Assembly: GCF_006345805.1 (NCBI RefSeq)
Contig: NC_042998.1
Coordinates: 131,068,001-131,132,000 of the forward strand
Length of the DNA: 64,000 nucleotides
Direction: 5' to 3'
Source: Octopus sinensis
Lineage: Eukaryota
This document shows positions 44,029 to 59,260 of the stretch, piece by piece. Under the pieces are notes generated by a model. It did no database searches. It saw nothing but the letters and a program-made list of their open reading frames with translations, and was not told where the DNA came from. The position numbers were made by a program, and so were the translations under genes. Positions within the stretch are counted from its first letter, which is position 1. Every line of letters starts with the position of its first letter.

Positions 44029-44139
44029 ATTTATAACATCGCATCATGTTTTTATTTTGATCAATTTACTCCACCACTCCACCACCCCACCAACGGTATA
44101 CACATGTGCTTATAATTATCAAGTACTCACCCCCGAATT

Positions 44140-44253
44140 TCTATATTATATATATAATATATATATATATACATACACGCACATATATATAATATATATA
44201 TAATATATATAATATATATGCTATATAGATAAATATATATATATACATACACG

Positions 44254-44289
<36 letters not shown>

Positions 44290-44868
44290 TATATATATAT
44301 ATATATATATATATACGTATGTGTATATATATGTATACTATATATACGTATGTATATATATATAATACATGTACCATACACATAAGTATATATATATATA
44401 TAATGCATGTATACATACACATAAGTATATATATAAATGCATGTATACATACACAAGTATTTATAAAAATACATATATACATACACATATATATATATAT
44501 ATAAATACATATATACATACACATATATATATATGAATACATATATACATACACATATGTATACATATAAATACATATATATAGACATATGTACACATAT
44601 ATATAAATACATATATATAGACATATGTGCATATATATATAAATACATATATTTACACATATGTACATATATATATAAATACATATATATACAAATATGT
44701 ACATATATAATATATATATATATTATATACATATATACATACACATATGTATATATATATATATATGTACATACATATATATTTGTATATATACATACAT
44801 ATTTATATGTATATATATGCTTATGTATATGTATATACATGTATATATCTGTATAGAATACATGAATG

Positions 44869-44922
<54 letters not shown>

Positions 44923-45160
44923 TGTATATATTCGCATATATATATATATATATATTTATATCTATATATATATATATATATGCATATACATATATATATA
45001 TGCACTTATACATGTATATATATATATATGTATGTATATATATATGTATATATATATATGTGTATATATACATGCATATGTATATATATTTATATGTCTA
45101 TATATATATATATATATATATATACATACGTATATGTATATGTATATGTATATGTATATA
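44140..45160. repeat. ~1-kb compound (TA)/(TACA)/(TATG) array with an internal ~36-bp minisatellite
   Basis: Unit taaatacatatatatagacatatgtacacatatata recurs with variants at ~44390-44720. Confidence 0.9.
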
Positions 45161-45536
45161 TCCAACCGATCTTGAAGAAACTTGGCACGTGTGTGTGTGA
45201 CCTATGCCCATGTGGCCACTTACGTACTTCGAATTTCCAAAAAACGATAATCTGTAATGAGTACCGATATTTCAAATTGAATAGGACATTTCAGTGCAAA
45301 TTCTCTTGTGAATGCTATTTTTTGTCATAACTTTTAAAGTTTTCAACTTATTTTCTTGCAATTTTATGCACAGATAGAATATGTGCTAAGGATGGTTTGA
45401 GAGAAATCAGTTTTTACCTAGACTACTCAAGCAAAACGTAAGATGATATTTTATAAACTGATTTAACGATATTTGGCGTAAATTGTTGTTGGATTAAAAT
45501 GTACATCAATCATTGCCGCATTCTCACCTTGCTGTA

Positions 45537-45722
45537 ACATGTATTTTGTTAACACCTACACTTAAAATGATCGATTCTAAACGTTGGAGCCTCGTGTGCT
45601 AAAACATATAACATGCATTTTCTGAACACCTGCACTGAAAATTATCGATTATAAACGTTGAAACGTTGTGTGCTAAAACATATGACACGTATTTTCTGAA
45701 CACCTGTAATAAAAATTTTCGG
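45537..45722 (+). repeat. ~74-bp tandem repeat, about 2.5 copies
   Basis: ...tcgatt.taaacgttg.a.c.t.gtgtgctaaaacatat.aca.g.attttctgaacacctg recurs in tandem. Confidence 0.85.
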
Positions 45723-47207: not shown

Positions 47208-49037
47208 TGGTGTATGAGGAAAATTAAAGTATGTCCAGAAATGCTGGGAAAGAGGTATTTCACGCTCGGATACGTTTTGAGAATTTAAAAGCTACACGTT
47301 CTACTTAGCCAAAAGTCTCCTTTCAGTGTAAATAGGTAATAATCTGAAAACTATAACCACCATGCACACATACATACATACATACATACATACATACATA
47401 CATACATACATACATACATACATACATACATACTCATATATACAGTATATATTTAATAATAACAGTCATTCTAGGATGATAGGAAAATTGCAGCAAGAAT
47501 GTGAGAGAGAAAATTGAGTGCATCTCATCTATTTTTCATATATTTAACGGGATTCTCAAAATGGGACAGCTTTATGATGCATAGGTAGACAAATATTATG
47601 GACAGAAAGTATCCATGATTTGTTTTCCACAAGAAGAATATCTTACATCATGTTCAGAATAATGTGGCTGATGCAAATGGGGTTGCGTTAAAGATGTGTT
47701 TTACTTGTTTTCTGTCCCACGGTGAATATTTATCTAACGAGAACTGATGTTGTTAGAAGAAAAGCAAACTGAGAATACATGTGAGAATAAAGAAATTCCA
47801 ACAATCATACTAATGTTTACTAATGTTCACTACAAAGAATATTGCTAAAATTGTTGGCAATTAGATAAATGTCTGCAAGTTTTTGCTGATAACCCTAACG
47901 ATGGAACTTAACAGAAAAATTACAAGACTAGTTAGCAATGATTTTGTTCCTACAGTTGCTGTACAAATAGATGGTGTATCATAGACATCAAGCAATTTTG
48001 GATATTCTTAACCCCTCAAATAAGTATTGATGACGGACTGTAATAAAAAGATAGGGCAACTCATCTTCCATGTGACTCTCAGTCCGCCCTTCACACAGTC
48101 GTCAACATCTTTCGTGGCAAGTGCGTGCCTTACTACGATATTCCGATTATCCATCCGCTGATGTTTTTCACTTTTTGAATTTCTCTTTACGACATTCCTA
48201 TACTTGTTATATGAACTGGAAATACGAGGGACTCTAATTAGAATTCATAATACTAGAATATAAGTAAAACTCTAAAACTCGATTCTAAACAATTACTCGC
48301 AAGAACCATGTACAAAAGTTTACATATTCTACTTGATATTCCTAAGTAAACACTAAAAGACAGCTAGGGGGATTTTGTTTACCAGTTTCGTCCCATCCGA
48401 GGTTTAAATGTACTCCCAACTTTCTGTTTCTCGACTTCTTCCTAAAGTTTGAAGCCGTCAGTCACTCATTAGTAAATACAATAAATAAAATCAACAGATT
48501 TCTTAATTTGGCACATTTCTCTACATTTATTGAGAGTTATACATCTATTGAAGAATCTGTCATCAAACGAAGTTTGTTACCGATTCTTATACTTGCTCTG
48601 ACTGCACTAAAGCTGATGTGTATCAATTATTGACATCAAAACCTTTTGATGTTTAGACACACGTGGTTTATGTAGCTATGAAGTAAAACATGCCTTCGCA
48701 AAACCTTATAGATCATCAACCTCAGCTGATCATTTATATAAAAATGGGGTCCCATTGGGCACAACAGCTTTGGGTATAGAAAAAACATTGAGTAGCAATA
48801 ACTCTGATGCCTTTTATCTTAGTTAAGCAGCAATAGCTAGGACACCAACAATAATTATCACTCATCAATTTCGAGTATCGAGTATAGAAATAAAGCCATA
48901 GATACATAAGCATGGAACATATGAAGATAAAAAAACTATATACACTGCAAAGAATAAAAGTGTGTGCGCTACTGAGTGGTGTATGAATTGTATGAATGTG
49001 TTAAAATATAAAGTTAATAAAGTGCTTACATTGAAGT

Positions 49038-51584
49038 CTATTCGTGGAGTTGATTGGCAATAAGTCTGTAGAACCACATTTTGTCGAATATAGCGTCAAT
49101 ATCTTTGAGAATGTCGTAAGTGTTGTCTACAGCAACGCTTTCAATTACGTCTATGAGAGTGAGGTTGAGGATTGACTTGGTAACAGCTTCATTAATCGCA
49201 ACAGAAACACTATCTGTAATACCTCGTATGACATTATTACAAATTCTTGTAGCTGTTTTCTCGGTAGGTTCCATAGCAACCACTTTACCAATTTCTTTCG
49301 TGACTGCAGTGCTTATCTCCATAATAACAGCTGTGCTAATTTGCAGTGATACTACTTTGCTGACTTCCAATGTGACAGCTTTACATATTCCTATCGTAAC
49401 GGCTTTACTGATTTCTTTAGCAACCGCTCTACTAATCTCCAATGTTACGGCATTACTAATCATCAATGACACAGACCTAGTGATATCCACGATTTTGCGT
49501 CTCTCTGCATCACAGTTTTGAATAACATTCAGTCCTACAGCTTTGCAGATCTCTGTTGCAACCGATAAACTGACTTGCATTGCAATATCTTTACTGATCT
49601 TGTTAGTTACTGCTTCGCTTATCTCTGAGGTAATGGCTTTACTAATGCCCTGAATGACGGCCTTAGCTATATCGATGGCAATGGCTTCACTGATCTCTTT
49701 GGTGACCATTTGACAGATTTGAAATGTCACACTTTTGCTTATGTTCTTGCAAAATGATTTGTTGACCTCATTGGTAACCGTTTTCTTGATATTTGAACAC
49801 ACCTGCCTGCAGATTTCTATAGGCACTGCTTTGTTAATTTCTGAGGAAATAGCATTAATAATCTCACTCGTTGCCGCCTCGGTGATATCCATATTAATTT
49901 CTTTATTCAATTCCAGTAACACACACTCTTCAAATCCCTTTACAACTGCGTTTCTGATTGCCATAATAATTTTATTGCTTATTATCCTTTCCACGACTGG
50001 ATTGCTGTGGATACTAACGTTTTGAATTCGCTTAGTAATTACGCCGCTAATATCCAGGCTGATGGTGTTGCTGAGGTTCTTCAAAACTTCAAAACTAATA
50101 TCAATGGAGATATCCTTCTTAATATCCATGGTAATGCTTTTGCTAATAACTTTGGACACACCTTTCCCAATGCGCGCTGTAACATCTTTGCTAATAGTCA
50201 TCGAGAGGCGCCTGTCGCTCTCGATGGTAATTCCGTCTTTGATCTTTTCGGCTACGATGGTACCGGTGTCTTGCAATTCATCAAACTTGCTGATTGCCAT
50301 AGAAACAGCATTTTTAACTTCTCTCTCAACATCACTGCTAAAATCTAGTGATATAGTTTTACTAACGATGTCTGTTATGATGCCACTACTAATTACTTGT
50401 GTCAGGTCATTGCAGATGTCAATCACTAAATTCTCGCTCACACCCTTGGAAACTGCTTTATTGATTTCTTGGTGAATGGTCCCATCTATCTCCATAGTTA
50501 CAGCTTTAAAAATATCTTTGCTAACATAGTCGCTAATAATGTTGTCAACTTCTATGTAGCAACTCTTGTAAGGACAGGGACTCTTGCTGATCTCCAAAGC
50601 CACTGCTTTGTTCACTTCCTCGGACATAGCCTGACTGATTTCTATAGTAACAGCGTCTATTATCTCTTTGTCAATAACCTTGCTGATATCAGCGGAAGCC
50701 TTTTTGCTAATTTTACTAATAACATCTTTTGTGATCACTCGGGTCACAGTTTGACTGATATGCCTAGTTACTGCCATACTGATTTCGCTAGTAATGGCAT
50801 TGTTAATCTCTAAGGCAACAGCCTTGCTAATTTCCCGTGTGACCGCTTTGCAAACCTCTCTGATAACACACGTGGGAACTTCTATATTCGCTGATTCACC
50901 AATTTGTACATCCATAGCTTTCCACATATTCTCTGATACAAGTTTGTTAATCTCCTTACCAATACATTTGCATATATAAGCCATAACGGATTTGCTTATC
51001 CCACTGGTCACGGCTTTGTTAATCTGCATCGTAACTGCTTTATCAATCTCTTTGGTTATGATATTGCAAACTTCTGTTGTAACAGCTTCACCAATTTTCA
51101 AAGCAACAACTTTACCAATCCCCATGGTAACGCATTTGCTTATCTCCAAAATCGCAGCATTTTTCAAATCGTGTGATATCGGATAAATGTTCTTTTTTTT
51201 CATAGCTTCGGTAATCTCAGTAGTAACAGCTGTGGTAATTTTTGATTTAATAGCTTCGTTAATGTCAATAGTTACAGATTTACGAATCTCTTTGGCGACG
51301 CTTGTACTTATCTGCAAAGTAAGAGGTTTGTTAATCGCCAGAGTGATGAAATTTTGAATTTCTGTTGTAACAGATTTGCTAATCTTCGTGGAAACAGCTT
51401 TAGAAATGTTAAGACTGACAGTTTTACTGTCAATATCGAACTGTACAGCTTTTCTAACCTTCCTAGCAACAGCCTTACATATCTCCGTGGTAACAATTCT
51501 ACTGATTTCCATAGCAACAGTTCCACTGATATCCATGGTAACAGCTTTGCTGATCTGAATATTTTCAGCGTTAGGGGTTTTCAT
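49038..51584 (-). CDS. Uncharacterised 848-aa octapeptide-repeat protein (consensus ISKAVTxE, ~100 repeats)
   Basis: 2547-bp uninterrupted ATG-to-TAG ORF in AT-rich DNA where all neighbouring TE ORFs are broken; strict 8-residue phase (I at 1, V/I at 5, E/D at 8) while the DNA units are strongly diverged; in-frame TAA 2 codons before ATG; no TE motifs, no signal peptide, no obvious TM segment. Confidence 0.8.
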   Translation of the reverse strand: MKTPNAENIQISKAVTMDISGTVAMEISRIVTTEICKAVARKVRKAVQFDIDSKTVSLNISKAVSTKISKSVTTEIQNFITLAINKPLTLQISTSVAKEIRKSVTIDINEAIKSKITTAVTTEITEAMKKKNIYPISHDLKNAAILEISKCVTMGIGKVVALKIGEAVTTEVCNIITKEIDKAVTMQINKAVTSGISKSVMAYICKCIGKEINKLVSENMWKAMDVQIGESANIEVPTCVIREVCKAVTREISKAVALEINNAITSEISMAVTRHISQTVTRVITKDVISKISKKASADISKVIDKEIIDAVTIEISQAMSEEVNKAVALEISKSPCPYKSCYIEVDNIISDYVSKDIFKAVTMEIDGTIHQEINKAVSKGVSENLVIDICNDLTQVISSGIITDIVSKTISLDFSSDVEREVKNAVSMAISKFDELQDTGTIVAEKIKDGITIESDRRLSMTISKDVTARIGKGVSKVISKSITMDIKKDISIDISFEVLKNLSNTISLDISGVITKRIQNVSIHSNPVVERIISNKIIMAIRNAVVKGFEECVLLELNKEINMDITEAATSEIINAISSEINKAVPIEICRQVCSNIKKTVTNEVNKSFCKNISKSVTFQICQMVTKEISEAIAIDIAKAVIQGISKAITSEISEAVTNKISKDIAMQVSLSVATEICKAVGLNVIQNCDAERRKIVDITRSVSLMISNAVTLEISRAVAKEISKAVTIGICKAVTLEVSKVVSLQISTAVIMEISTAVTKEIGKVVAMEPTEKTATRICNNVIRGITDSVSVAINEAVTKSILNLTLIDVIESVAVDNTYDILKDIDAIFDKMWFYRLIANQLHE

Positions 51585-51859
51585 AGCTTAGCAGTTTTAC
51601 TGCCCTTAAAATGACAAAAATGACTTTCACCGACGCTGTTCTTTTCCCCAGCTTCGCTGCAATCTTTAAATTGAGAATTGGAAAACTTCAAAGATCACCA
51701 TAGTAACCGTTTGGTTTGTTGCTATGACAATAGCAACAAATGTTGATAGCATGAAAAGTCCTTTAAACGTCAGAATAGAAAACAAAAAGACAAAAGCAAG
51801 ATTAGAAATTTTAATGTGTGCGTATATATACGTACTTACAAACATATATCCATACATAC

Positions 51860-51879
51860 ATATGTATATATATATAAAA

Positions 51880-51921
<42 letters not shown>

Positions 51922-51948
51922 ATATATTTGCATATATATATATATATA

Positions 51949-51985
<37 letters not shown>

Positions 51986-52111
51986 TGTGTGTGTGTATAT
52001 GTACATATAATATACTGTATATATATATATGTATATATAAATATACATATATATATATATGCATGTATAGATATACTGTATATATATATATACTGTATAC
52101 ATATATAACAG

Positions 52112-52145
<34 letters not shown>
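51860..52145. repeat. (TA)n-dominated microsatellite upstream of the 848-aa ORF
   Basis: Directly visible. Confidence 0.95.
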
Positions 52146-52270: not shown

Positions 52271-52571
52271 TAGGAGAAGGAAAGATCCAGAGAAGGGAAG
52301 ACAGAAGAAAAAAAATCACCAACGGTACACACGCGGTCACATTTTGACATATACTTACTGTATATATATAGTATTCTATCTGCGCACATCTATCTATGTA
52401 TGTTGATGTATATATGTATAGTTTAATATGAATATGTACTGTTGTGTAATATTTTAATGCATTTTAACATTTTGATTTCAATTTTCATGTATTAATTATA
52501 TTTCCTTTATTAATGACAATATGTATTTTAACCAAAGATTCGATGTAAGGTTTTTTCCTCGAATTTCATAA

Positions 52572-52604
<33 letters not shown>

Positions 52605-55530: not shown

Positions 55531-55599
55531 TTTCAAGGTTTTCAAATAATCATACTTTATATATTTTTATATTTATCTATTGGTACACTATTATTTTGG

Positions 55600-56900
55600 A
55601 CGTATATCATCTGTGCCTGAAATTTCATAGCATTGATTTGCATGTTATTTTTTGTTACCCATTTGTATATTTTATTCAGATCTTTCTGCAGTTTTATTAT
55701 GTTTTCTGGGTTCCTAACTGCCTGCGATACTTTTGTGTCGTCAGCATAACTGGTCAGATTTGATGACTGTACCTCTGAGAGGGCCACCACAAATAGTAGT
55801 GAGACTCCACTGAGAACTGGTGTCTCTTCTGAGTAAGCATCATTGGCTACAACTGTCTGACTCCTGTCCGTCAGAAAGTGATGCAGCCACTCTCCCAGTT
55901 TCCCAGTAATACCAATGTATCGCAGCTTGTGACATATCATGTCATGATCAACCTTGTCGAAGGCCTTGGCAAAGTCGAGGTATATCACATCTACAACTGA
56001 CTGGTTTAGCTGTTGTTCCTCTGTCAGGTGTGATCTCATACTATAATTGAGGTGTTTGTTTAAACGATTCAAGATCTTTATTCTCCACCGCATGAATATT
56101 CTACTGTATCGGGAATGATGTTTTTGTGTGTATTGGCTCTCTTCTCTGGGGCATATTTAATGCATATAGCTCGCATTATTGACATTAATATATTGGAGTA
56201 TCTCTTTTTCAAGTGACTTTCAGTCAGCCTTCTAGAAATTTAGGTAGGATAGATATTGAGCGCCACTTGTGCGGGGTTTACCTTTAGTTAATTCTGGGTC
56301 ATACATTGTCACTTCTATCATGTTATGGTCTGAGAATATTGTCGGTGATATATTTACGTAATGGATAATTCCCACCCTCTTTGTAAAACAGAGATACAGG
56401 ATATTTTCGTACCTGGTTGGAGAGAGCATGATCTGCTCTATGAATAGCATTTTCGTAAGATCAAGTAGAGATTCTGCTTGATTTCGCTCTTTTTGCGTTA
56501 TTCCTGGGGTTATGCTGCCCTCAGGCTACCTGATGTTGGGGAAGTTGAAGTCACTCATCAGGAATATATTATTACGTTGATCCAATTGTGTTAGTACTTC
56601 TTTTATCGCACTGAGGCTTTCCTCAAGTTTTCCATCAAGATTTGAGACAGCAGGTGGGCGATATAGTGTGCAAGCCCCTATAACAAGTTGTTTTAGGTGT
56701 ACTATGTGTGTGTCACACACCGAGTTCGAGTTCGGCTTAATGCTCTGACATCATCGCGGATGTACATTGCAACTCCACCGTGACTTCGTTTTCTTCTATC
56801 TGTACGGAAGATAGTATACATTGGTATGTGTATCTCCGCATCATGTATGTCAGCAGATAGGTGTATTTCTGTAAAAAATACACCTGAGAAATACACCTGT
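55600..56900 (-). mobile_element. Second CR1-like LINE copy (EN, internal deletion, RT core)
   Basis: FTEIHLSADIHDAEI..RSHGGVAMY, YRPP, SDFNFPNI; RT VDVIYLDFAKAFDKVDH, SYADDTK, LQKDLNKIYKW..NNMQIN..KFQ. Confidence 0.9.
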
Positions 56901-56924
56901 CTGATGATGATACTACTACTACTA

Positions 56925-57009
56925 CTACTACTACTGCTACTAGTAATAATAATAATATAATAATAATAATAATAATAATTATAATAATAATAATATTAAT
57001 AATAATAAT

Positions 57010-57060
<51 letters not shown>
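56925..57060. repeat. (TAC)n/(AAT)n microsatellite
   Basis: Directly visible. Confidence 0.95.
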
Positions 57061-58480
57061 TTACAGTTTCAATATTGTTAACTGGTCAATTACTGAAATA
57101 TGTCAGCTCGACAGAAAAATAAGGAAACTGTTGACAATGCATAGAATGCACCACCCTAAGGCAGATACAGAACGACTCTATCTGCCAAGAAAAGAGGGAG
57201 GCCGTGGTCTTTTGCAACTGGCAATATCAATGAAGATTGCTACAATTGGCCTAGACACCTACCTGAAAAACTCTGAGGACTGGATGTTAAAACTTGTCTC
57301 AAAACATGTAAACAAGAAAGCATCATACTCAGTAACAAAACAGGCAAAGGAATATCTAAGTGAATTCCGAAAACAACCAATTTCGTAATTAGAGATAGAT
57401 ATACAAGAAACAAGCACAGAAAAAGCTAGGCGCATGAAAACCCGTGCCAAAACTGCGGCCTTAGATATTCTGAATAATAAATGGCAAGAAAAACCTCTCT
57501 ATGGCAAATACCCAAAGAGAGCGAATAATGCAGATATCGACAAATCCCTGACCCATCAATGGCTAATGGCCTCTGGCTTAAAATCTGAAAGAGAGGGGTT
57601 TATCATAGCAGCTCAAGATCAATGCCTACCAACAAGAAACTACCAAGCCAACATATTAAAGAACGGCAGTAGCCCAACATGTCGTGTATGCCGACACCAA
57701 AATGAAACCATTGACTATGTTGTCTCCAAATGCAGTCTTCTAGCGCCTACAGAGTACCTCAGTAGGCATGATAGAGCTGCACAATATATTCACTGGGTAA
57801 TTTGCAAAAACCTGGATTTGCCCCATGAAAAAAACTGGTGGGAACACAATCCACCTCCTGTGCTTGAAAATGACCACATTCCTCTGGAACTTCACCATTC
57901 AAACTGACAGGAAGATAGATGCAAATAGGCCAGACATTATATTGAAAGACTTCAGACAAAGAACATGCCTCCTCATTGTCCCAATCGATATAAACGTATC
58001 TGTCAAGACCTACCAAAAACTGAGCAAGTATAAAGATCTTGAAATAGAAATCAGCAAAATGTGGAACCTGAAGACTAAAACAATACCTGTTGTCATAGGT
58101 GCCCTGGGAATGATAGCGAAAGGGACTGATTGCTACCTAACTCAGATACCAGGAAACCCCAAAATGGCAGAAATTCAAAAGATAGTGCTCACGGGAACTG
58201 CTCATATCCTACGCAAAATACTCTCTATGTAATCCCAAGGTTTAAAACAAACTTTTTTGTTTATTTATTTTAATTTTTATTTTATTTATTTACTTTTTTT
58301 TAAATTTATTTATTTATTTTTTTATTTTTATGTATTAGACATTCATTAGTACAACACCAAAAAAAACCCAAAAAAACCCCAAATATATGGCACAGAACTT
58401 CCAACCTGTTGTCTCTTGAGGTCTCTGGGTGAGACTTGGAGCCAACTTGTACAGACATAAGGCAAAAGTCAAACATAGAA
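57061..58480 (+). mobile_element. Dong/R4-like RLE non-LTR retrotransposon, 5'-truncated, flanked by (AAT)n
   Basis: LLTMHRMHHPKADTERLYLPRKEGGRGL, AAQDQ, CRVC..ETIDYVVSKC (CCHC), NRPDII..K..KYKDL..E, PVVIGALG..ILRKILSM* (58232); (AAT)n on both sides. Confidence 0.9.
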
Positions 58481-58499
58481 TAATAATAATAAAATAATA

Positions 58500-58543
<44 letters not shown>

Positions 58544-58548
58544 TAATA

Positions 58549-58623
<75 letters not shown>

Positions 58624-58624
<1 letters not shown>

Positions 58625-59260
58625 GATGCCCTGATGCAGTACCATGCCCTGATATAGTACCTCAATGCCCTGATGCAGTACCAGGCAGTGGCTTTCAGGA
58701 CTTCTGATCTTAACTGATTGGAAGTGTTATTATGTACATATTTTGTCTTGGTATAAAAGATGGGCTACAGCAAATATTCTGCTCAATACCACAGATTTGC
58801 TAGTCATTTGTTTGACCTTAACCATTTGAGCATGTCCCTTAGTGGCTGACGATATGTGCATCTCTGATCACGAGCAGAAGTAGTCGGGGGTGGTATCATA
58901 GGCATGTGTTGAGAGGGATTCTTTGGGTTTGAATAATTCACCTCTGGAAACATGGGTGTTTCGTTCAACATCCTTAAACAACCCTTATGCAGGGACATTT
59001 TGAACGGGATGGGTTACTCGATCTGAAGAAAATTCTAACTGGGCTCCATCTGCAAGGTCATGTGCTGTTTATCTTGATATGAGATCACCATGTCGCGCAC
59101 ATATGGTTGTGATGCATGTGCCTGGTGTACCCTTATCAGACGGGTAGTCATGATGGGTATACTGGGCTTCGTATATTTTACCCCAGTGTCACTTTGATGG
59201 CATGCTCTGATCACTCACTCAATAATAATAATAATAATAATAATGGTAATAATAATAATG
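58624..59260 (+). mobile_element. ~600-bp non-coding repeat ending in (AAT)n, probable non-autonomous partner of the Dong-like LINE
   Basis: No ORF; begins in and ends with (AAT)n; 5' 18-mer atgccctgatgcagtacc present three times. Confidence 0.55.

Follow-up and report, generated by a model that had tools for sequence, protein, structure and literature searches.

Ice-nucleation proteins are rich in Gly, Ser, Thr and Tyr, carry super-periods of 16 and 48 residues and are beta-solenoids. Coiled coils adopt 3.33 to ~3.9 residues per turn, with 3.8 as the known extreme, so that a period of 4.0 lies outside their range, and work on periodicity beyond this limit has so far relied on engineered insertions (Hartmann et al. 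2016, PMC4786415). Here we describe a gene of Octopus sinensis whose product, called here the octad protein, is built on a period of exactly 4.0 residues. The gene lies in a stretch of 64,000 nucleotides of contig NC_042998.1 (assembly GCF_006345805.1, positions 131,068,001 to 131,132,000), hereafter called the window, whose first base is position 1 in all coordinates given below. The first-pass annotation of the window, made from the letters without database searches, had reported an intact open reading frame (ORF) of 848 amino acids (aa) with ~100 octapeptides as the only long one in the 64 kb, and an ORF scan together with segmentation of the protein agrees with this. The ORF is, with little room for doubt, a real gene under selection, and what selection keeps is an aliphatic residue (Ile/Val) at each fourth position, in an octad with a further preference for Ser/Cys, Lys, Ala, Thr and Glu.

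Coding sequence and selection

The ORF runs from ATG to TAG in a single exon on the reverse strand and is the only one in the window that exceeds 300 aa; the runner-up has 292 aa, begins with GTG and lies inside an AT microsatellite. The remaining five frames over the same interval contain 17–135 stops each. The base composition of the coding strand predicts ~7% stop codons, which by our own arithmetic gives a chance of ~1e-28 for an open frame of 848 codons. The coding sequence and its immediate 5' context are as follows:

49038..51584, reverse strand: complete single-exon coding sequence, 848 codons plus TAG, with the stop at 49038-49040 and the ATG at 51582-51584 (comparison with O. vulgaris)
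51585..51620, reverse strand: immediate 5' context of the ORF (read from the sequence; splice site inferred)

An exact-protein look-up places the octad protein on two chromosome-scale records, CM016860.1 of GCA_006345805.1 (O. sinensis, the record that holds the window) and OX597815.1 of GCA_951406725.2 (O. vulgaris). The first-pass guess at a cephalopod is thereby borne out. The two species split ~2.5 million years ago (10.1101/2023.05.16.540928). Since the flanks of both ORF copies align, the loci are syntenic. The protein is identical in the two species. Among the 2547 bases of the ORF, 5 differ, all of them silent third-position transitions, and there are no indels, giving a silent divergence (dS) of 0.0093 over ~539 silent sites and a replacement divergence (dN) of 0 over ~2005 replacement sites. 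The probability that all five differences would be silent under neutrality is 4e-4. The unique flanking DNA differs by ~0.7% between the species, and the microsatellites are rich in indels; at the flank rate, ~14 replacement changes would be expected under neutrality (our own arithmetic) and none is observed. The first 1.1 kb 3' of the stop, with 2 interspecies mismatches, is conserved like the ORF itself.

Pairwise comparison of 85 clean octad units within the protein gives unit-to-unit identities of 0.52, 0.61 and 0.35 at codon positions 1, 2 and 3, respectively, against 0.27 at random. The second base of the codon is identical in 100% of cases at octad position 1 and in 93% at octad position 5, and Ile is encoded by ATT, ATC and ATA. 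Since the second bases are held and the third bases are near random, selection acts on the protein pattern and not on the DNA repeat. The earlier statement that the DNA units are more diverged than the protein does not hold for raw identity, which is 49% for DNA and 29% for protein, but its basic point stands, third positions being 35% identical (27% at random); the accompanying proposal of selection on the protein is upheld by the codon-position pattern and by the five silent-only differences from O. vulgaris. These silent-only differences, together with the retention of Ile/Val despite near-random third bases, indicate a real gene under purifying selection. The locus is thus a genuine protein-coding gene, intron-less and single-copy in appearance, which is present in both O. 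sinensis and O. vulgaris and missing from public protein sets.

An in-frame TAA lies 2 codons 5' of the ATG and a second TAA 3 codons beyond that, so that no contiguous N-terminal extension is possible and this exon supplies no signal peptide. The first-pass annotation had noted the missing signal peptide and had allowed for an upstream exon that supplies one; a contiguous one cannot do so. A pyrimidine tract followed by AG (ttttgtcattttaag) is found just 5' of the ATG and, as judged from its letters, could be a candidate acceptor of an intron in the 5' untranslated region (UTR). The whole 5' context is the same in O. vulgaris apart from base -1. On the 3' side, an AATAAA is present ~500 nt beyond the stop. 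A splice-donor look-alike AATGTAAGC (GTAAG) occurs 12 nt past the stop, followed ~50 nt later by a pyrimidine tract and CAG (48975-49028, reverse strand), and this region could hold a small 3'UTR intron.

The octad repeat and its period

The octad protein consists of 15.7% Ile, 10.6% Val, 10.1% Ser, 9.8% Lys, 8% Thr, 8% Ala and 7.2% Glu; Gly and Pro together make up 3.5% and Gly alone 2.5%. Simple dynamic-programming segmentation delimits 103 octads, 85 of which are clean, with the loose consensus I-S-K-A-V-T-x-E. Position 1 is Ile in 74/103 and Val in 13/103 (87/103 in total), and position 5 is Val in 59/103 and Ile in 24/103 (83/103 in total), in agreement with the first-pass claim that hydrophobic residues are kept at these two positions. 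Position 2 favours S/N/C (S 39/103, C 11/103), position 3 is K in 44/103, position 4 is A in 38/103, position 6 favours T/S/A (T 34/103), position 7 is variable, and position 8 is E in 36/103 and D in 17/103 (53/103 acidic). The Cys residues at position 2 account for 11 of the 19 in the protein, as their reported recurrence there implied. Strong conservation is confined to positions 1 and 5, and the mean unit-to-unit amino-acid identity is 29%; therefore, the proposed ISKAVTxE repeat stands as a strict I...V... comb, and the consensus is otherwise loose.

Hydrophobicity along the chain is autocorrelated at +0.43 to +0.47 for lags of 4, 8 and 16, and the values turn negative for odd lags. For residue identity, lag 8 gives 0.24 where 0.084 would be expected, and the values of 0.24, 0.23 and 0.22 at lags 8, 16 and 24 show no super-period. 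The hydrophobic moment of in-phase runs of 74–199 aa has a single sharp peak at 90 degrees (4.0 residues) with harmonics at 135 and 180 degrees, and is at noise level at 95–105 degrees. The linkers and the C-terminal tail MWFYRLIANQLHE named in the first-pass annotation are all present, and every linker changes the octad phase. All of the following parts lie on the reverse strand and are listed from the N-terminus to the C-terminus:

51192..51554, reverse strand: octad run 1, aa 11-131, ~15 units, the phase shifting by one residue at aa 51 (segmentation)
51180..51191, reverse strand: linker NIYP, aa 132-135, a predicted helix break (full-length AlphaFold2 model)
50583..51179, reverse strand: octad run 2, aa 136-334, which from aa 140 has 25 units free of phase slips and is the longest in-phase stretch (segmentation)
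50559..50582, reverse strand: linker SPCPYKSC, aa 335-342, with 2 Pro and 2 Cys
50286..50558, reverse strand: octad run 3, aa 343-433, more degenerate (segmentation)
50259..50285, reverse strand: linker FDELQDTGT, aa 434-442
50016..50258, reverse strand: octad run 4, aa 443-523 (segmentation)
49992..50015, reverse strand: linker SIHSNPVV, aa 524-531
49521..49991, reverse strand: octad run 5, aa 532-688, with 18 in-phase units at 543-686 (segmentation)
49494..49520, reverse strand: linker QNCDAERRK, aa 689-697
49272..49493, reverse strand: octad run 6, aa 698-771, predicted as one continuous alpha-helix with a confidence score above 90 (AlphaFold2 with internal-repeat alignment)
49254..49271, reverse strand: hinge EPTEKT, aa 772-777, end of the confident helix (AlphaFold2)
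49080..49253, reverse strand: degenerate octads, aa 778-835 (segmentation)
49041..49079, reverse strand: non-repeat aromatic C-terminal tail MWFYRLIANQLHE, aa 836-848

Predicted fold, proposed assembly and rival explanations

AlphaFold2 run on the full-length single sequence gives a mostly helical model that breaks at the linkers, with a predicted local distance difference test score (pLDDT) of 36. When an alignment of ten internal blocks is supplied, aa 702-771 form one uninterrupted alpha-helix with a mean pLDDT of 90.6, which terminates at the EPTEKT hinge. The models suggest that the octad runs probably fold as helices. Glu-to-Lys pairs at i+3 number 34, compared with 12.7 +/- 3.1 in shuffled sequences, and those at i+4 number 13, the same as in shuffles; charged residues make up 208/848 or 24.5% (K+R 106, D+E 102).

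The predicted 70-residue helix is a long alpha-helical stretch of the kind seen in coiled coils, and the core periodicity of the octad protein lies outside the ~3.33-3.9 range that includes 7/2, 11/3, 15/4 and 19/5. The 90-degree moment peak bears out the first-pass remark that a 4.0 period fits neither left-handed nor right-handed coiled coils well (PMC4786415). Our own estimate from Crick geometry, assuming two strands with 3.63 residues per turn, R0 = 4.9 Å and a rise of 1.51 Å, gives for a 4.0 period a right-handed supercoil with a pitch of ~50 Å, a pitch angle of ~31 degrees and a bending radius of ~18 Å. A supercoil of this kind is not believable in rods so long, so the Ile/Val ridge has to spiral round straight helices, and we infer that it would do so about one turn per 36-39 residues, meeting several partners in turn. 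Neither of the two folds proposed at first is retained: a strongly right-handed bundle would need that pitch and bending radius in rods of 75-200 residues, and a solenoid disagrees with the straight helices given by AlphaFold2.

These considerations lead to a favoured reading, quite conceivable although short of probable, that the octad protein consists of about seven helical rods and acts inside a specialised cell type as a fibrous or scaffold protein that self-assembles. A role as a self-assembling structural scaffold is suggested with less assurance. About seven rods of 58-199 residues, roughly 90-300 Å long, would be hinged at short Pro/Gly/Cys-containing linkers, each of which shifts the octad phase. 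Because a ridge with a period of 4.0 is beyond the coiled-coil range, there would be no single continuous coiled-coil seam, and the ridge may instead be buried against several neighbours in turn, the rods packing side by side into bundles, sheets or a paracrystalline fibre; alternatively, helices may cross at about -50 degrees in a 4-4 ridges-into-grooves packing. The missing signal peptide and the in-frame stops just 5' of the ATG suggest an intracellular location. Disulfide cross-linking of a protein that has no signal peptide, as was also proposed at first, is pure conjecture.

Several points weigh against this reading. The protein and its fragments are absent from a collection of 15 billion proteins, which would fit a low or very restricted expression. 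The AlphaFold2 model from the single sequence is poor, and the confident helix rests on a shallow pseudo-alignment of internal repeats, for which kind of sequence AlphaFold2 tends toward helices. Beta-branched residues (I+V+T) make up 34% of the protein and its period-2 amphipathicity is strong, with a 180-degree moment of 0.8-1.3, so that a beta form is possible. The packing argument is a geometric inference, and other exons may be spliced into the ORF.

It is unlikely, but conceivable, that the protein represents an alpha-helical fibre architecture not previously described, in which a 4.0-residue comb over up to 25 octads assembles beyond the coiled-coil limit by some other rule. Under such a rule, several neighbours could share a spiral Ile/Val ridge, 4-4 ridge-groove packing could run on continuously, or each octad could contain one pi-bulge; the V/I arrays of other animals, bacteria and giant-virus-like proteins described below would then be convergent uses of one rule. 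Somewhat less likely still is that the octads form beta structure, or are helical in solution and switch to beta when the protein assembles or is drawn, either as long amphipathic strands with an I/K/V/(L,M) face and an S/A/T/E face in a cross-beta or silk-like sheet, or as a beta-solenoid like that of bacterial ice-nucleation proteins. The beta-branched content and the 180-degree moment are what such strands would show, period-2 is the top peak of the fast Fourier transform, and ~100 contiguous octapeptides recall the ice-nucleation proteins; the AlphaFold2 helix at a pLDDT of 91 argues in the other direction, as do the lack of any octad position enriched in the Gly/Asn/Pro turn-formers that a solenoid needs, the lack of a 16- or 48-residue super-period, and a charged residue every 3-5 positions, which caps the length of aggregating stretches. 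Slightly less probable again are monomeric rods, which could act as a spacer, tether or ruler in the manner of a stable single alpha-helix, or could offer docking sites to many copies of one octad-recognising partner. The helix prediction, the excess of Glu-to-Lys i+3 pairs and the inability of a spiral ridge to make a continuous dimer seam (PMC4786415) are in line with such rods, but the charged fraction of 24.5% is far under that of ER/K-type single helices, and 26% Ile+Val exposed on a lone helix would be very sticky.

The remaining rivals concern the gene rather than the fold. The ORF could belong to a larger gene as one of its exons, for instance if an upstream exon is spliced into the body of the ORF; the true product would then be a different one and could be secreted. 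We regard this as improbable: the plausible acceptor 5' of the ATG and the GTAAG 12 nt past the stop suggest UTR splicing, and cephalopod genes commonly cover large distances, but in-frame TAAs stand between the candidate acceptor and the ATG, the whole ORF from ATG to stop is free of replacements between the species, no other gene call lies within +/-10 kb of the ORF in either O. sinensis or O. vulgaris, and a tblastn search of the window finds no paralogue or paralogous exon of the octad protein. The least probable explanation, which is largely refuted, is a non-functional open frame, that is, a decayed 24-bp minisatellite that happens to be stop-free, or a transposon or viral ORF. It would account for the missing annotation, homologues and expression data, and there is retroelement debris nearby (55.5-57.9 kb); against it, all 5 interspecies differences are silent and none is an indel, and since the DNA units are just 49% identical, a decayed satellite would be full of stops, like the other frames. 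A transposon or viral origin is further opposed by the lack of flanking long terminal repeats or terminal inverted repeats, a repeat scan of the window having given microsatellites only, and by the lack of a Pfam domain and of a viral or metagenome relative; as for ORF1 of a long interspersed nuclear element, the reverse transcriptase fragment 4 kb upstream on the same strand is on the wrong side.

Relatives, genomic surroundings and known systems

The first-pass annotation had called the gene an orphan, and the Pfam, PDB, HMMER, repeat and contig scans agree with it, giving no match to a characterised family, a transposable element or a virus. A Pfam scan of the octad protein at E<=10 returns noise only, the best match being LptD_2 at E=0.047, below its cut-off; weak matches to DUF4599 and antifreeze type III were rejected as noise. 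Searches of the PDB by sequence and by repeat profile give no match below E=0.09. A word-indexed search of 5.8 billion clusters gives no match among 8000 candidates with the full protein, and nothing with the non-repetitive C-terminus (89 aa) or the middle region (145 aa). Scans of viral (IMG/VR) and JGI metagenome contigs give no relative, and literature searches on octapeptide or octad repeats of cephalopods and on orphan repeat genes of the octopus turned up nothing about this gene. Since the exact sequence is absent from the 15-billion-protein collection, the gene appears to be unannotated.

A HMMER search of 1.84 billion representative proteins gives 53 matches, the best at 1.6e-31, of which 42 sequences were inspected and 20 traced to their source. 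Their arrays resemble the octopus protein in an aliphatic 4/8-residue periodicity with V/I at every fourth residue, but the similarity does not extend beyond the array and is the same whatever the register, the flanks are unrelated and many arrays have a Pro in each unit. They were rejected as homologues and are regarded as low-complexity analogues with differing units, flanking domains and taxa. They include arrays from Diploptera punctata (KAJ9580655.1, EIAEPVAE), Cherax quadricarinatus (XP_053646480.1, VTSDVVQQ) and Haliotis rubra (XP_046549145.1), as well as from oyster, frogs and giant-virus-like fibre proteins. P0016, an IRESVTAE array with ankyrin repeats, and P0031, a NISKAVSR array, have most of the octad motif in common with the octopus protein and are 25-34% identical to it over the array. 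P0031 (ENA metagenome contig ERZ26052494, 3001-5682) is an unnamed 893-aa basic eukaryotic protein rich in Ser, Lys and Arg; its ~20 NISKAVSR octads, including ICKSV, make it the closest motif match among the inspected hits, homology not being established. Bacterial membrane proteins (P0004, P0024 and P0027, with an Mrr_cat domain) and large fibre-like proteins (P0007 and P0021) carry Ala-Val arrays every fourth residue, of the form AVAQPVAD... (P0004) or AVNxAVDx.... No Pfam family confidently covers these Mrr_cat and fibre-like arrays, the only match being YTV at E=3.8e-4, just under its cut-off. The matching proteins are uncharacterised and, among the sequences examined, none is from a cephalopod. 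These matches show that 4.0-period aliphatic arrays recur in nature, uncharacterised so far.

The silent sites speak to the age of the array. Third-base identity between same-amino-acid codons in neighbouring units is 0.39-0.43, against roughly 0.27-0.39 that codon usage predicts for the abundant residues. Duplicated DNA inside the gene nowhere exceeds 93 nt in length, or 77% identity over at least 40 nt. With the interspecies dS as a clock, a rough estimate by our own arithmetic places the separation of the units on the order of 1e8 years. Because silent sites between units are near saturation, the array appears to be old, and unannotated orthologues in other cephalopods are likely. Hence, the first-pass label of a lineage-specific protein is retained insofar as there is no annotated relative, but the near-saturated silent sites point to an old array. 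Either cephalopod orthologues have been missed by gene prediction, or the silent sites of the array evolve unusually fast. In either case, near-saturated silent sites set against absent relatives make a useful case on the true age of 'orphan' repeat genes.

Rfam and tRNA scans of the window are empty. An (AT)n/(ATAC)n microsatellite block (51824-52144, and 52391-52600) begins ~240 bp 5' of the ATG, and the alignment of O. sinensis with O. vulgaris breaks down exactly there, with 29 mismatches and 21 gap columns in 250 bp; the promoter must therefore be in the short unique stretch 51585-51820 or past the microsatellite. Another AT-rich microsatellite block, at 44127-45330, contains long imperfect inverted repeats (arms 44404-44723 and 44845-45164, 72% complementary) and is the source of spurious ORFs of 292 aa and 187 aa. 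A 74-bp unit is tandemly duplicated with 85% identity at 45535-45682 amid otherwise unique DNA. Decayed retroelement fragments, unlinked to the octad gene, lie on opposite strands at 55557-56093 (reverse) and 57434-57907 (forward); one 178-aa ORF in them matches RVT_1 (E=1.1e-9), and the other weakly matches zf-RVT (E=0.006, below the cut-off). (TAC/TAA)n arrays are found nearby at 56905-57057 and 58468-58632. Inside the octad gene, six antisense ORFs of 86-137 aa are present (49120-51614, forward strand), and two antisense frames have only 17-18 stops in 849 codons; these ORFs seem to follow from the sense-strand codon periodicity and do not look like coding sequence.

The octopus thereby gains a selected, unannotated 2.5-kb gene that may mark a specialised cell type or material, and present octopus gene sets are seen to overlook intron-less repetitive genes. 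If the rods are helical and assemble, the protein would provide a natural case for testing what happens past the periodicity limit of coiled coils and could add a building rule for protein fibres and their design. To judge from the models, it may be a helical fibrous protein of periodic build whose period is not known to be usable.

Compared with known systems, the octad protein has neither the very high Glu/Lys/Arg content nor the dense i/i+4 pairs of ER/K single alpha-helices, and neither the ~98-degree moment nor a Pfam match that would relate it to the 11-mer lipid-binding repeats of apolipoprotein, perilipin, synuclein and LEA proteins. An AKAP-type RII-binding helix (phi-phi-x-x, period 4) was rejected by inspection, the octad having an acidic position 8 where that motif needs an aliphatic residue. 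The domains, terminal repeats and viral-collection relatives that would mark a transposable element or viral ORF are likewise not found. Reflectins and suckerins, like the octad protein, are repetitive, taxon-restricted cephalopod proteins with no outside relatives, but they differ from it in composition and repeat length, and there is no Pfam reflectin match. Ice-nucleation proteins of the InaZ type share with it the plan of a large protein made almost wholly of ~100 contiguous octapeptides. The octopus protein is, however, eukaryotic, rich in Ile, Val, Lys and Glu and predicted to be helical, has neither the 8/16/48 hierarchy nor the Gly/Ser/Thr/Tyr-rich composition of the octapeptide beta-solenoids, and gives no sequence match to them. 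The non-heptad right-handed coiled coils (11/3 in tetrabrachion, 15/4, and 19/5 = 3.8 in YadA) share with the octad protein long predicted helical rods, a periodic aliphatic comb, Ala beside the aliphatic residue and phase shifts at discontinuities, and the octopus protein differs from them in a period of exactly 4.0, past the known extreme of 3.8 (PMC4786415).

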